Of a DNA stretch of 64,000 nt, positions 40,768 through 48,312 are shown one piece after another. This stretch comes from Macrostomum lignano (taxonomy: Eukaryota): the NCBI GenBank assembly GCA_002269645.1, contig NIVC01000202.1:62001-126000 (forward strand), written 5' to 3'. A program made the position numbers and the translations under genes. The notes beneath the pieces were generated by a model. That model was not told the origin of the DNA and searched no databases. It was given only the letters and a program-made list of their open reading frames with translations. Position 1 is the first letter of the stretch. Each line of letters starts with the position of its first letter.

Positions 40768-41095
40768 ATGCTAAGAGCCCAGCTCAGCGGCAAAAGTCTG
40801 AGCGCCAGCACTAGCGGAGCAGGAGGCCACGGGGCTTCTGCGCTTGTCAGCGACATAAATCGCGATGCTGACCGACAGAGCGCGCGCTTCTTCGGCATTC
40901 ACAAGGTGGCGCAGTCCAAACAGCGGGGCCGCAGGCCCCAGCTGAGCGAGTGCTACGTCCTGCTGCCTGGAGAGGGTGTCGTCAACATTCCGTTTGATGA
41001 GGCTGGAGATTCTGAGGCGACTCTGGCTAGTGTTGGACAGCAACTGGAGCTGCAGACTGGATTCGCCATGTCTGCCTGTTGCTTGGTGCCCAGCA
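40768..41095 (+). CDS. Ubl-ankyrin (ANKUB1-like) gene exon 1
   Basis: CYVLLPGEGVVNIPFD...TLASVGQQLELQTGFAMSACCLVP resembles the ANKUB1 ubiquitin-like domain (LRTLVTLRCGLPVSVYCL, recalled). GTAAG donor, phase 1. Confidence 0.65.
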
Positions 41096-41357
41096 GTAAG
41101 AATTTCGTCTGAGGCATTGTAGCCTTTTATTTACTAGATCTTTTGATAAAGAACTCGATTGGAGCAATAGACAGCTAGCGGCTTCGAAGTCGTCACCTAC
41201 CGGAAGTCACTGAAGTCAGTTAGCGCTCAGTCCTGTGTCATAAGAGGTCCCGGGATCAATTCCAGGTTTGATAAAAAATGTAGGTCTCATAGGACTTTTG
41301 AACTCTTATAAGTACGTTTATTAAAGCGCCATCTTCTTCCAAATTGTCGTCTATTAG

Positions 41358-41642
41358 GTGAAGTTGCAAATCGACGTGAAAACGCCGGTAGCCGGATCTT
41401 TCATGGTGCAACGCTGAGCCTGAGCCTGCAGCCGGCCTACCAGCAGCTGCTGACAGACGTGCAGGCGGGCAACTGCTCCGGGGTGCGAGCCTGGCTGCTA
41501 GCGGCTGCCAGAGCGGCTCCAGGCGGCGGTGTTGAAGCGGCCGACGGTCGACTTCGGCTACGACCGGTGGCGCACGCAGGGCTCCTGCTGGCCTGCTGCC
41601 TTGGAAACCTGAATTTGGTGCGCCTGTTTCTCCAAAGCATGC
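41358..41642 (+). CDS. Ubl-ankyrin gene exon 2
   Basis: IFHGATLSLSLQPAYQQLLTDVQAGNCSGVRAWL...LLLACCLGNLNLVRLFLQ (end of Ubl plus ankyrin helix pair); phase-consistent. Confidence 0.7.
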
Positions 41643-42531
41643 GTGAGTGCTGGCTGGGACCGATGGAGAAAGTAACACTCGTCGAAATTCTCATCCAAGT
41701 CTTCACTTAGTAACAGAAAATCCTCGTGTAACAACAACAGAATGCACAGGCCACGAGTGGCCACAAAGGGGGCGAAGGTATCAGAACAAACGCATTTAGG
41801 CCGCACTTCTCAAGAAGTGAGCTCCCTCAGTCAGAGTCAGAACTGGGTCTCTCGCATCCCTCAGAAGCAGCTGGCTCCGTCCATCCAGCTTCTCCAGGTC
41901 ATCCGTCGGGGTCCATATAATAATGAGGATATGTATGTATAATAGCTATGAATAATTATTCATATTCAGCCAGCAACTTTCAAGAAAGACTTGAAAAATA
42001 CGCCAAAACCCTAGCAAAAGTGGGCACTAGAAGTACTAAGAGTAACCTAAAATCAGCTGGCTAGGCTATTTTGCTAAAAGTTGCCCCTTTAACTCTGCTG
42101 TCAACATATTTTCTATAATTGCAAGTGCACTTAATTGCTAGTTCTAGACAGACAATCTACAGTCCGTCACTACTTGGGTTTAGAGATAAGCCTTGAGCAT
42201 GCTCAGGCGAGAGCCCAAATCTTTAATTTCATTCGGAAGAACCCAGCGCGCGTTGCAGTTCGCTGAAGCAACGAATTAGAAGAAAGTGGCGCTTAAAATG
42301 ACGCTTTTGGTTCCTAAAGTGGGCATTTTTGTTTAAACTGCTGATAGCAGGATCCTTTCTACCAGAATCAAGGTGCGCATTCGAACAAACCGAATAAACC
42401 GTTCTTGAGAATTACCTTGAAACTGAATATAGATACTTTCATTATTCGATAGCAATGCGGAAAGCTAAGTGAAATTTCTGTAAAAGTTTCAGGAATACGA
42501 GTATTTGCATTTTTTCCAAGATATAAAAAAT

Positions 42532-42802
42532 AATGATAATACTAATAATAATAATTGATTACACCTGCCCTAATGGGAAGCTGTGGAACCGACAGCTCAG
42601 CCGCAGCTATTGCGCGGCGCATCTGAAGGCTGCGTACGGCTGTTCTGTCCAAGGACTGGTGGGTCGCCACACACAGCCTCAATTACCCCAGCTAATGCTG
42701 GCACCCATTTTACAGCTGGGTGAACTGAAGCAATGCAGAGTTAAGTGTCTTGCTGAAGGACACAAATTGTTCCGATTGGGTCGAGAATCGAACCCCCGAC
42801 CT
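42532..42802 (-). mobile_element. CORE-SINE family B, copy 3 (5'-truncated)
   Basis: B-box and body present; A-box missing. Confidence 0.87.
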
Positions 42803-42995
42803 ATTTTACCAAAATAGAAAGATAATAGTTGCGTACGAGTATTGTGGGAAAGTAAGTCTCAATACATGATTGCTAATGTTAAATTTAAATCAGCAATCAG
42901 ATTAAAAGCGGTGGGTTTCAACACCAACTACTTAGAAAGTAGTAAAATCTATTAGCTATGTATGAAGTGTATAAAGAGTTCGCTTCAGCACACTA

Positions 42996-43327
42996 GGGAG
43001 AGAGGAAAAGAGAGAGAGAGAGAGAGAGAGAGAGAGAGAGAGAGAGAGAGAGAGAGAGAGAGAGAGAAAAGAGAGAGAGAGAGAGAGAGAGAGAGAAAAG
43101 AGAAATAGAGAGAGAGAGAGAGAGAGAGAGAGAGAGAGAGAGAGAGAGAGAGAGAGAGAGGAAAGAGAGAGAGAGAGAGAGAGAGAGAGAGAGAGAGAGA
43201 GAGAGAGAGAGAGAGAGTGAGAGAGAGGAAAAGAGAGAGAGAGGGAGAGAGAGAGAGAGGGAGAGAGAGAGAGAGAGAGAGGGAGAGAGAGAGAGAGAGA
43301 GAGGGAGAGAGAGAGAGAGAGAGGAGG
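42996..43327. repeat. (GA)n microsatellite
   Basis: Directly visible. Confidence 0.98.
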
Positions 43328-43808
43328 GCGCCTCCAATCTCGGGCACTGACACGGTAGAAAGTCAGAAAGGACTGAAAAAAGTCAATTTAAATTGAGTAG
43401 CCGATATTTCGAAATCAAATTTCTTCGTCAGGGCTGCAAGCGAGTGAAGTTTATTTGGCGCGAATTGCCGTCAATATATAAAGGCGATATCGCCAGGGAG
43501 AGACGATCGATAAATTGATGTGCTCAAGCACTTAAAACAGTACGCATGGTCAGTACATTAAAACGAGTCCGAGACTATGAGAAAAGCGGGGGGTGGCTAA
43601 AACTGTACAATTGGGCCTAGACGACCTTTAAGTGTAGAATAAAAATTGCAAAAATAAATGACGAAATAAATAGGTAAGGTAAATAAAAATAATTATTAAA
43701 TGCTCAGAGCAAAAATGCAGGTGCACCGTACACAGTGTCAGAAAAATGAATAAAAAGCAGAAAATAAATAATCTGAATAAATCGAAATAAAGTCAATGAA
43801 AAATCACA

Positions 43809-43933
43809 AGAGAGAGAGAGAGAGAGAGGAGAGAGAGAGAGAGGGAGAGAGAGAGAGAGAGAGGGAGAGAGAGAGAGAGAGAGAGAGAGAGAGAGAGAGA
43901 GAGAGAGAGAGAGAGAGAGAGAGAGAGAGAGAG
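43809..43933. repeat. (GA)n microsatellite
   Basis: Directly visible. Confidence 0.98.
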
Positions 43934-43943
43934 AATTAAGTCT

Positions 43944-46457: not shown

Positions 46458-46821
46458 ATGGCAGCGGAGAAACTCACTGATCCAGAGGCCAGCAAGTGTC
46501 TGAGACGCCAGATGTTTAAAAGTCTGACTAAAATTGAACGCTATTTAAAGCGTCACGATCCGCAGGGTTTGCAACGAATCAGCGAGTGGTACAAAACAGT
46601 GAGTACAACAGATGAGGATACGACAGACACAGTTCCTTCCGCAGCTGAGCACGATGACGAGCAAAGGCTACGTCGGCAGAGGCGAAAACTACGACGCCAG
46701 AAAAGAAAGCAAAAATTCAAGCAGTTGCATTGCTACGAGTACAGCATCAATCATAACGGCAGTGATCATAACGGATGGGTGAGACGCGTCGAGCAGAACG
46801 AGATCCACGAGTCCAAGCTAG
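46458..46821 (+). CDS. Exon of an uncharacterised gene (own ATG at 46458, or spliced in at 46465 from the ankyrin exon)
   Basis: Long non-repetitive ORF with a basic RRQRRKLRRQKRK patch. GTGAG donor in phase 1 continues into 47164. Confidence 0.7.
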
Positions 46822-47163
46822 GTGAGCAAAGGTCGTTTTGCTGCTCATGATTTTAGTAATCTAATTTTTAGTATATGGATATGTGCTCGATGTGCAAAGG
46901 CAGTCAAACGTCCTCAACTGTCAAATTGCTGGCAGTCAAACGTCCTCAACTGTCAAATTGCTGGCAGTTCAATTAAAAAACTTACATCTGTGCTTGCATT
47001 GTACAACTTTTAAGATCCTGTTTTGAAGCACTCATCAGGATTGAAAAAAGCTTAAACTATATTAAACATTTTACTTTCAGTTTCAGTAAAGTATTCTAGC
47101 TTGTATGCACGGAGTACGTTGTTTAAATTATTCCTTTATTAATTTTTTACAACGACACCGCAG

Positions 47164-47507
47164 CGTATCTGCGGATTCCCAGAGGCATCGCTAGCCGCAG
47201 TCTGCTAGTTCCGCCCCAGCCAGATTGGCTGTTCTCCGACCTGCTGCCAGATGTACTGCCCGAGGATGAATCCTTCCAGCTGAACAGCAACGTCAGCAAC
47301 GCCGAGGAATCGTCGCGTCGATCAGCCGAGCGAGAGCTGACCCGGATGCGGCTCGACCGCTGGGTGTTTCTTTATTTTCTGATGCTGCGCGCTAACTGGG
47401 AGAGCACCGTGGTTGAGGAGAAGAAGTCGGCTCCGGATGTAAACATGTACGCTGAGGAGCACCTGCACAAGTGGACTGTGCGGCTGAGGTTCAAGATCAT
47501 GCGACAG
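47164..47507 (+). CDS. Next exon of the same gene
   Basis: Open, phase 1 in and phase 0 out; ends ...KWTVRLRFKIMRQ. Confidence 0.75.
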
Positions 47508-47613
47508 GTGGGGCATTCCTTCTTAGGAACTGCTTCTAGCCTGTTCTAGGCGGGTATATAATGCATGCAGCAATATTTTTATAAAACGGCAAAACGTTTT
47601 AACAACGCTGCAG

Positions 47614-47783
47614 GTGGCCATGAAGGTAGCTTTGTGCGGCTTCCTGTCTCGCCTTGGGCTGGAGAGCAATACAAAAATTGTATTCTGTCGAGACGGCTTC
47701 TACGGTCTAATGGACGTGGGCAATATCTACGGCGAGACGACCAAAACGCCATACGCCATGATAAGCTTGAATTCAACGCCCAG
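47614..47783 (+). CDS. Exon encoding most of a SUMO-like domain
   Basis: VAMKVALCGFLSRLGLESNTKIVFCRDG...ISLNSTP; cag and gtaag boundaries. Confidence 0.75.
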
Positions 47784-47793
47784 GTAAGTTACC

Positions 47794-47990
47794 ACTACGA
47801 CTACGACTACGACTACGACTACTACTACTACTACTACTACTACTACTACTACTACTACTACTACTACTACTACTACTACTACTACTACTACTACTACTAC
47901 TACTACTACTACTACTACTACTACTACTACTACTACTACTACTACTACTACTACTACTACTACTACTACTACTACTACTACTACTGCTAC
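47794..47990. repeat. (TAC)n microsatellite in a short intron
   Basis: Directly visible; source of the poly-Tyr and poly-Val ORFs. Confidence 0.98.
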
Positions 47991-48050
47991 TAATACTACA
48001 ATAATTACAACTACAATTTTAATTCTGTATTCTTCTCCAACACTCAAAAG

Positions 48051-48312
48051 GTACTTGGGTCTGAAGAACGGCGATTGCATATTTGTCAATTCGTGCAGCG
48101 TCACGCAGCGTCAGATGATGGAGCAGGCGTCAACGAGGCCGGATGCGCCAAAGAGGCGCCACAAGGCGAGCCGAGGATCCGTTGCATTCGCCGACGAGCT
48201 CGAACATGGAAGCGACTACGACGATGAGAATGCTGGGGAGGAGGGTGAGCCAGGATTTGGAATTCACTTAGAACATGGCGATAGCCAATTACTGAACGGG
48301 TTAGAGTTTTAA
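48051..48312 (+). CDS. Terminal exon (end of SUMO-like domain plus acidic tail)
   Basis: RYLGLKNGDCIFV completes TPxxLGxxxxDxIxV; phase 2 consistent; TAA stop. Confidence 0.7.

Follow-up and report, generated by a model that had tools for sequence, protein, structure and literature searches.

The closest described counterparts of the locus studied here are proteins built around SUMO-like or ubiquitin-like folds. Members of the RENi (Rad60-Esc2-NIP45) family have a polar, positively charged N-terminal region followed by C-terminal SUMO-like domains without a di-glycine, two of them in animals and fungi and one in plants, where it comes after a helical segment (PMC549199). The acidic residue with which SUMO contacts the backside of Ubc9 (E67/D68) is kept in the SUMO-like domains of Esc2, Rad60, and NIP45 (PMC7849368). 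According to SMART, human ANKUB1 combines a single ubiquitin domain with three ankyrin repeats and a low-complexity region (PMC7284028). We examined a 64,000-nucleotide (nt) stretch of genomic DNA from the flatworm Macrostomum lignano (contig NIVC01000202.1 of assembly GCA_002269645.1, positions 62,001 to 126,000; the window below), in which a first-pass annotation had joined seven exons between 40768 and 48312 into one gene with a ubiquitin-like (Ubl), ankyrin, basic, and SUMO-like architecture. Our analysis suggests that the locus probably holds two neighbouring genes instead, gene A with ankyrin repeats and gene B with a predicted SUMO-like domain, the latter resembling RENi proteins in layout and the former possibly related to ANKUB1.

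Coding Potential of the Locus

Proteins matching the seven-exon model were sought in databases, and the locus was compared with a second copy on contig NIVC01003501.1 of the same assembly (L001), which is ~97% identical over window positions 35.8–50.9 kb, and with a third copy (L003). The arithmetic of the model was fully reproduced: the seven segments sum to 2025 nt, encode 674 amino acids (aa), and stay free of stops until the TAA at 48310–48312, with all six donors opening with GT, all six acceptors closing with AG, and every join in frame. Against L001, the exons of the N-terminal half differ by 16 substitutions in 892 nt, 11 synonymous and 5 nonsynonymous, with no indels and a ratio of nonsynonymous to synonymous differences (pN/pS) of 0.16 (binomial p = 4e-4 for the synonymous excess, with site counts after Nei-Gojobori). 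Those of the C-terminal half differ by 5 substitutions in 1133 nt, all of them synonymous, again with no indels (pN/pS = 0; p = 5e-4). Introns and flanks are ~3.4% divergent between the same two copies and carry numerous indels. Given the synonymous excess and the complete lack of indels against a copy of ~97% identity, all seven segments are, by their pattern of substitution, genuine coding sequence, and both halves belong to real genes.

Number of Genes

The sole database protein found to match the model is NCBI PAA51110.1/PAA88061.1 (BOX15_Mlig022411g1/g2), a 379-aa product with 100% identity that begins at the ATG at 46458, which sits 7 nt 5′ of the proposed acceptor and has an in-frame TGA 9 nt upstream. 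Gene models of M. lignano come from genome-guided RNA-seq assembly, split wherever the reads showed trans-splice or poly(A) sites, with open reading frames (ORFs) called by TransDecoder (PMC5730564). Had the transcript been spliced from exon 3, the ORF called would have been longer, so the 379-aa transcript-based model counts against a fusion. The end assigned to exon 3 by the first-pass annotation, 45190, was not confirmed either, as the frame stays open and the exon-like properties run on to a TGA at 45352–45354. GC content is 0.60–0.66 across 45200–45349 and drops to 0.26–0.40 directly after this TGA; at the other five donors, it is already down to 0.38–0.44 in the first 100 nt of the intron. 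The 164 nt at 45191–45354 differ from each of the two other copies by a single substitution and have no indels, and the 465 nt that follow show 14–15 substitutions and 11 indel positions. Since this stretch is unique in the window, it is not a copy of a GC-rich repeat. The donor at 45191 reads gtaaag and lacks the G at +5 of the M. lignano donor consensus, GT[G/A]AG (PMC8629364). Exon divergence from L001 also differs four-fold between the two sides of the proposed junction, at 1.8% in the gene A half and 0.44% in the gene B half (Fisher p = 0.0035).

Relatives of gene B were collected by scanning 1.84 billion representative proteins with HMMER, without filters, and none of the 15 that were found bears a Ubl-ankyrin N-terminus, meaning that the domain order of the seven-exon model is shared by no orthologue or paralogue among them. 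The neighbourhood is not conserved at the paralogous loci. At locus L002, the upstream neighbour is an ankyrin-repeat protein kinase unrelated to gene A, and at locus L005 (paralogue P0018) there is nothing gene-A-like in the 10 kb upstream. A weak ankyrin match upstream of paralogue P0005, considered as a case of conserved adjacency, proved to be the ankyrin-repeat protein kinase and was discarded. We consider it likely that the locus comprises two separate protein-coding genes on the same strand, 1.1 kb apart, gene A at 40768–45354 and gene B at 46458–48312, and that 45190>46465 is probably not a main splice. The single-gene architecture is thus not supported by the annotation, by the stand-alone homologues, by the apparent extension of exon 3 to its own stop, or by the adjacency at the paralogous loci, and the evidence favours the alternative that the first-pass annotation had itself raised, namely that 45190>46465 was its weakest link and that a two-gene model starting from ATG 46458 was possible.

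Several observations weigh against two genes and for a single one, in which the main mRNA would cis-splice 45190 to 46465 and encode a 674-aa (or 693-aa) Ubl-ankyrin-basic-SUMO-like protein. The GT at 45191 and the AG at 46463–46464 are intact in all three copies and join in frame, the constraint on 45191–45354 taken alone is borderline (Fisher p about 0.05–0.13), a second frame of that stretch is likewise open, and an older ab initio model in UniRef (A0A1I8IFW3; P0002, 776 aa) also fuses the ankyrin region to the C-terminal half. However, an in-frame join arises by chance one time in three, and P0002 takes another, implausible path, reading through the 45190 donor, rejoining at 46566, shifting the frame of exon 1, and drawing in distant leucine-rich repeat (LRR) exons; because this path is chimeric and frameshifted, we ruled it out as support for a fusion. 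A single gene would also have to accommodate an annotation that begins 5′ of its acceptor, a donor without the consensus G at +5, an intron opening with 164 nt of conserved, exon-like, open-frame sequence that ends in a stop, and an architecture seen in no member of the family, and we regard it as very unlikely. Ab initio models in operon-rich, trans-splicing genomes can be chimeric in this way, with P0002 merging LRR exons, gene A, and gene B. The seven-exon model appears to be a cleaner merge than P0002, with canonical GT-AG borders and all frames kept, and is one that sequence alone cannot dismiss. The striking fused architecture is most likely a merge of two neighbours, which calls for caution with gene models in a trans-splicing, operon-rich, and repeat-rich genome.

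Two genes might still share a transcription unit, as an operon or a conjoined pre-mRNA from which the gene B mRNA would be freed by 3′ processing of gene A and/or by spliced leader trans-splicing, and which may give rise to minor read-through or cis-spliced fusion products. Trans-splicing affects ~30% of M. lignano genes and operons contain ~15%, the criterion for an operon being a repeat-adjusted distance below 1 kb (PMC8629364). The spacer between the two genes (45355–46457, + strand) is 1103 nt long, of which 252 nt are a (CAAC)63 microsatellite at 45825–46076, and genes A and B lie on the same strand, which fits such a unit. It is AT-rich (GC 0.38–0.40), diverges by ~5–6% from L001 and L003 with indels, and has no exon-like GC island anywhere within 45355–46457. 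An AGTAAA hexamer at 45456 is a candidate poly(A) signal of gene A, the sequence TATTTAAA is found ~90 nt upstream of ATG 46458, and a YTNCAG-type motif, CCTGCAG, was read by eye ~185 nt upstream of the same ATG, the last of these in favour of a shared unit. On the other side, a leader (CGGTCTCTTACTGCGAAGACTCAATTTATTGCATG as published; PMC8629364) spliced onto 46465 would delete ATG 46458 and bring its own terminal AUG out of frame, the acceptor at 46464 does not fit YTNCAG, and the adjacency of A and B is not kept at the paralogous loci. Searching the literature and supplements by gene identifiers gave no match, and no trans-splicing record for gene B was found there. A shared unit therefore strikes us as rather unlikely, and there is only a slim chance that it would also produce a minor 45190>46465 isoform joining the ubiquitin-like, ankyrin, and non-conjugatable SUMO-like domains. 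If true, such an isoform would be a single adaptor bridging ubiquitin and SUMO recognition, alongside the two separate proteins.

It is also conceivable that gene A is non-functional, either an unexpressed relic or a chance ORF. No gene is called at gene A in either of the two annotated copies examined, both with transcript-based annotation, which counts against gene A as a working gene, and a word-indexed search with the N-terminal half found no homologue at E ≤ 10. The annotation pipeline dropped novel transcripts below 0.5 reads per kilobase per million (RPKM) (PMC5730564), a filter that plausibly explains why gene A is missing from the gene set. A relic fits poorly with a pN/pS of 0.16, with 11 of 16 changes synonymous, and with the absence of indels over 892 nt next to indel-rich flanks; in addition, the frames are intact in three copies, the GC content is exon-like with sharp borders, and the ankyrin repeats are bona fide. 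We find a non-functional gene A highly improbable, and the gene is under purifying selection. This leaves a conserved ankyrin-repeat gene absent from the transcript-based M. lignano gene set.

Structure and Fold of Gene B

Gene B has four exons on the + strand and encodes 379 aa. Exon 1 (46458–46821) is the fourth exon of the earlier model extended by 7 nt to the ATG at 46458; it encodes the N-terminal helical region and a basic stretch (~46644–46745), and 46465–46821 shows no difference from L001. The SUMO-like domain starts at ~47352 in exon 2 (47164–47507), which contributes strand 1 and a helical insertion. Exon 3 (47614–47783) encodes the core of the domain, with the invariant residues R249, G251, and D263-G264-F265 and a 19-residue family-specific loop, and exon 4 (48051–48312) encodes the last SUMO-like strand to ~48138, then a helix, a basic patch, and an acidic tail before the TAA. 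A (TACTAC)35 microsatellite at 47790–47999 takes up most of the last intron, where the copies diverge more than in any other segment (8%). The encoded protein is identical to PAA51110.1/PAA88061.1 and is laid out as predicted N-terminal helices and a basic region resembling a nuclear localization signal, a disordered linker, one SUMO-like domain, and an acidic C-terminus. The basic region that the first-pass annotation had named is present as RRQRRKLRRQKRKQK, and AlphaFold2 gives residues 95–165 as low-confidence or disordered.

A single-sequence AlphaFold2 prediction of gene B was uninformative (mean predicted local distance difference test score, pLDDT, of 42). With a 13-sequence alignment of the family (A1), pLDDT rises above 90 over approximately residues 185–320, and the predicted elements run strand, two helices, strand, helix, strand, long loop, strand, and helix. 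Foldseek against the PDB returned almost only SUMO-1/2/3, yeast Smt3, Smt3 fusion constructs, and the second SUMO-like domain (SLD2) of NIP45 (3a4r), with the SUMO matches at probability 1.00, template modelling (TM) scores of 0.8–0.9 when normalised to the ~76-residue targets, and 13–17% identity. A profile comparison with hhalign matched the family domain to SUMO1/SUMO2/Smt3 at 93.6% probability (E = 2.2e-7, 57 columns, 28% identity) and to a broad ubiquitin-family alignment at 2.1%; both figures should be read with caution, as the reference sequences were entered by hand. In this alignment, R249 and G251 fall on the R-Q-G of SUMO, and D263-G264 falls on E67-G68 of SUMO and D68-G69 of Smt3. 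The 19-residue insertion comes after this DG, following strand 3, and a second family-specific insertion places helices between strands 1 and 2. Taken together, the model with pLDDT above 90, the TM scores of 0.8–0.9, and the hhalign match confirm the SUMO-like C-terminal fold first proposed from sequence, and we are confident that gene B carries a SUMO-like beta-grasp domain. There is a single such domain, with no sign of a second in gene B. No GG follows its last strand, where the chain continues as ...CIFVNSCSVTQRQMMEQ... into a helix and a ~55-residue tail, and the same holds in the paralogues; lacking a C-terminal di-glycine, the domain cannot be conjugated.

Compared with SUMO-1/2/3 and Smt3, gene B thus has a similar predicted fold and the same R-x-G and D/E-G motifs, but its domain is embedded in a 379-aa protein, has no C-terminal di-glycine, and carries both the helical insertion between strands 1 and 2 and the 19-residue loop after strand 3. 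The likeness to RENi proteins lies in the basic N-terminal region followed by a SUMO-like beta-grasp without di-glycine, in the presence of NIP45 SLD2 among the Foldseek matches, and in an invariant Asp of the family at the position of the Ubc9-backside contact. Gene B comes nearest to the plant layout, with a single domain preceded by a helical segment. However, no sequence-level homology between RENi proteins and the gene B family was detected, either in the Pfam Rad60-SLD comparison of 13 members or in the HMMER scan; gene B has a single domain and not the pair found in animal and fungal members; its fold has two large insertions; the domain is not at the extreme C-terminus but is followed by a ~55-residue tail, basic and then acidic; and the family is expanded, with at least 11 transcript clusters in one flatworm. 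Due to the missing sequence homology, the single domain, the insertions, and the tail, we did not class gene B as a RENi member, and it appears to be RENi-type in layout.

Possible Role of the SUMO-like Domain

Based on the fold and the RENi comparison, gene B could be a nuclear, non-conjugatable SUMO mimic that would bind the backside of Ubc9 and/or proteins with SUMO-interacting motifs (SIMs), like the SUMO-like domains of Rad60, Esc2, and NIP45. In the alignment, the invariant D263 stands at the position of the contact with the Ubc9 backside. We put this role forward as the leading one, if tentatively. What tells against it is that the case for Ubc9 or SIM partners consists solely of the fold and one aligned acidic residue, and the two insertions could alter the binding surfaces. 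If the role is correct, these proteins would add a level of control over the SUMO pathway that is specific to this lineage, in an animal used as a model of regeneration and accessible to RNA interference and transgenesis.

As the main alternative, the domain might be a generic beta-grasp interaction module outside the SUMO pathway with a lineage-specific role, for example in chromatin or RNA binding through the basic and acidic regions. The low identity to SUMO in structural alignments (13–17%), the lack of any member matching the Pfam Rad60-SLD or ubiquitin models, the modification of the fold by two large insertions, and the confinement of the family to one lineage are all consistent with this. 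The profile match, however, is specific to SUMO (93.6%) over the wider ubiquitin family (2.1%), and every family member keeps the SUMO-conserved R-x-G at the end of the helix and D/E-G after strand 3. A generic module is possible, and we would suggest it with some doubt.

The Gene B Family

Of the 15 relatives returned by the HMMER scan, 14 were traced to M. lignano and 1 to sequencing run SRR30276812. They are 152–372 aa long, save for an ab initio model of 745 aa that has the domain at residues 78–248, and those based on transcripts are stand-alone proteins of 244–380 aa whose C-terminal half holds the conserved domain and which leave no space for a Ubl-ankyrin N-terminus. Gene B belongs to a multigene family of at least 11 transcript clusters, found so far only in Macrostomum. 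A word-indexed search with the family alignment recovered only 4 members. When 13 members were compared with Pfam, there was no Rad60-SLD match at E ≤ 1 or E ≤ 10, and no model matched any member.

Automatic names within the family are mutually contradictory. The UniRef entries for the WormBase-derived members P0003, P0008, P0010, P0014, P0015, P0017, P0020–P0024, and P0035 are a case in point, and the names across the family include Snurportin-1, FERM, TF-B3, SPK, UAS, NSE4, HELICc2, TGFb_propeptide, SH2, Spt5-NGN, and Rad60-SLD. One member is called a “Rad60-SLD domain-containing protein”, the only one of these names to agree with the fold, though the Pfam scan did not reproduce it. We rejected “Snurportin-1” for P0003 given the inconsistency of the UniRef names and the lack of Pfam support. 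A family so far listed as hypothetical proteins under erratic names can now be described as non-conjugatable proteins with a predicted SUMO-like domain and two insertions in the fold, seen in no other identified organism among the 1.84 billion proteins.

Some individual loci are worth noting. Positions 10001–11907 of L003 hold the gene B copy P0004 (Mlig019084g1), whose C-terminus differs from approximately residue 293 on, with either a frameshift or an alternative acceptor at the last intron as the cause, a change that would remove the last SUMO-like strand; P0004 could be a damaged copy or a mis-model. A Logan contig from SRR30276812 (L004, 1–1016) looks transcript-like and contains an uninterrupted 218-aa ORF (P0013) that is closest to Mlig022324, with no spliced leader at the 5′ end of the contig. 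It may be the only evidence of the gene B family outside the reference assemblies. At L002, the ankyrin-repeat and protein-kinase gene upstream of P0005 (5015–8738, + strand) is apparently unannotated and is separated from P0005 by a ~1.2 kb gap with tandem repeats, a spacing pattern like that between genes A and B.

Structure of Gene A

In our revised model, gene A has four exons on the + strand, or three if a 57-nt mini-exon is left out, and encodes 370 aa with the mini-exon or 351 aa without it. Exon 1 (40768–41095) starts at ATG 40768, with an in-frame TAA 39 nt upstream, and encodes a low-complexity N-terminus, followed by the beginning of a putative Ubl (from ~40948). It differs from L001 by 3 substitutions (2 synonymous) and no indels, and its donor, GCA|gtaaga, fits the M. 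lignano consensus. Exon 2 (41358–41642; 10 substitutions, 7 synonymous, no indels; donor TGC|gtgagt) completes the putative Ubl (...GATLSLSLQP) and goes on into the first ankyrin repeats, with the Pfam match beginning at ~41582. The last exon, as revised, spans 44912–45354 and encodes ankyrin sequence to ~45084, a Ser/Ala-rich linker, and a Cys/His-rich tail up to the TGA at 45352–45354.

The mini-exon (41841–41897) consists of 19 codons, QLGLSHPSEAAGSVHPASP, and preserves the frame between AG/GT borders. It is identical to L001 at all 57 positions, while its flanks differ at 15/198 and 13/203, and at a rate of ~7% zero differences would occur by chance with a probability of roughly 0.016. Its GC content of 0.60 exceeds that of the flanks (0.49 and 0.38), and its sequence is unique in the window. 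The mini-exon adds a loop between ankyrin repeats, and with it the Ank_2 score is 26.4 bits instead of 30.9. By its conservation, this segment, proposed earlier as an optional exon, is probably a real one, whether constitutive or optional.

The ankyrin repeats of gene A, about three in number, are well supported: Pfam matches Ank_2 at 30.9–31.4 bits (cut-off 27.3) and Ank at 24.6–25.2 bits (cut-off 21.1) over residues 185–262, in both cases above the curated cut-offs and in agreement with the initial description, and the sequence matches in the PDB are ankyrin proteins without exception. The putative Ubl occupies residues ~61–134, and its second half overlays ubiquitin by eye without gaps (CCLVPSSEVANRRENAGSRIFHGATLSLSLQ). 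There was no match for it in Pfam at E ≤ 10 or in the PDB with phmmer. Both hhalign against a ubiquitin-family alignment entered by hand and a filter-free home-made hidden Markov model (1000 shuffles) left the segment at shuffle level; the two tests also missed the SUMO-like domain of gene B, and since this positive control failed, they have no power here. The tail at 45191–45351 is rich in Cys and His (CCHGKGC...GGCSGCCQH) with no family match, and it could be a metal-binding or lipidation site.

Gene A would act as an ankyrin-mediated adaptor, possibly of an ANKUB1-like kind. As in ANKUB1, about three ankyrin repeats follow a segment that, by eye, has a ubiquitin-like hydrophobic pattern (...GATLSLSLQP in gene A and ...STLHLVLRL in ubiquitin). 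Gene A departs from ANKUB1 in its low-complexity leader of 58 residues and its Cys/His-rich tail. ANKUB1 is not known to bear a SUMO-like domain, and under the two-gene model gene A has none as well. Its layout is compatible with ANKUB1, of which it may be a relative.

Genomic Surroundings

Upstream of gene A lies an Arf-family small GTPase gene on the minus strand (~36800–39770, 227 aa), and downstream of gene B a BBIP10 gene on the plus strand (from ~50820, 84 aa), both assigned by correspondence with annotated copies; in the third copy of the locus, L003, an innexin gene follows. LRR coding exons on the plus strand at 25905–26988 are interleaved with minisatellites, and P0002 links them to gene A 14 kb away; this link, drawn across the minus-strand Arf-family gene, is almost certainly chimeric. 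Distinct minisatellite arrays, at least 15 of them, occur in 1999–31281 and 55321–64000, with periods of 12–44 nt and lengths of 0.3–2.8 kb each (1999–4593, 19628–22381, 23023–25800, and 27174–29384, for example), and make up a large share of the window. These arrays account for the extreme GC and AT skews at 20–30 kb. An interspersed repeat of ~260–280 bp occurs in five to six copies that are 90–94% alike, at 37732–37991 (−), 40349–40613 (−), 42526–42802 (+), 53167–53428 (+), and 59424–59676 (+), with a weaker copy at 49008–49252; one copy lies within the long intron of gene A and another just upstream of its start codon.

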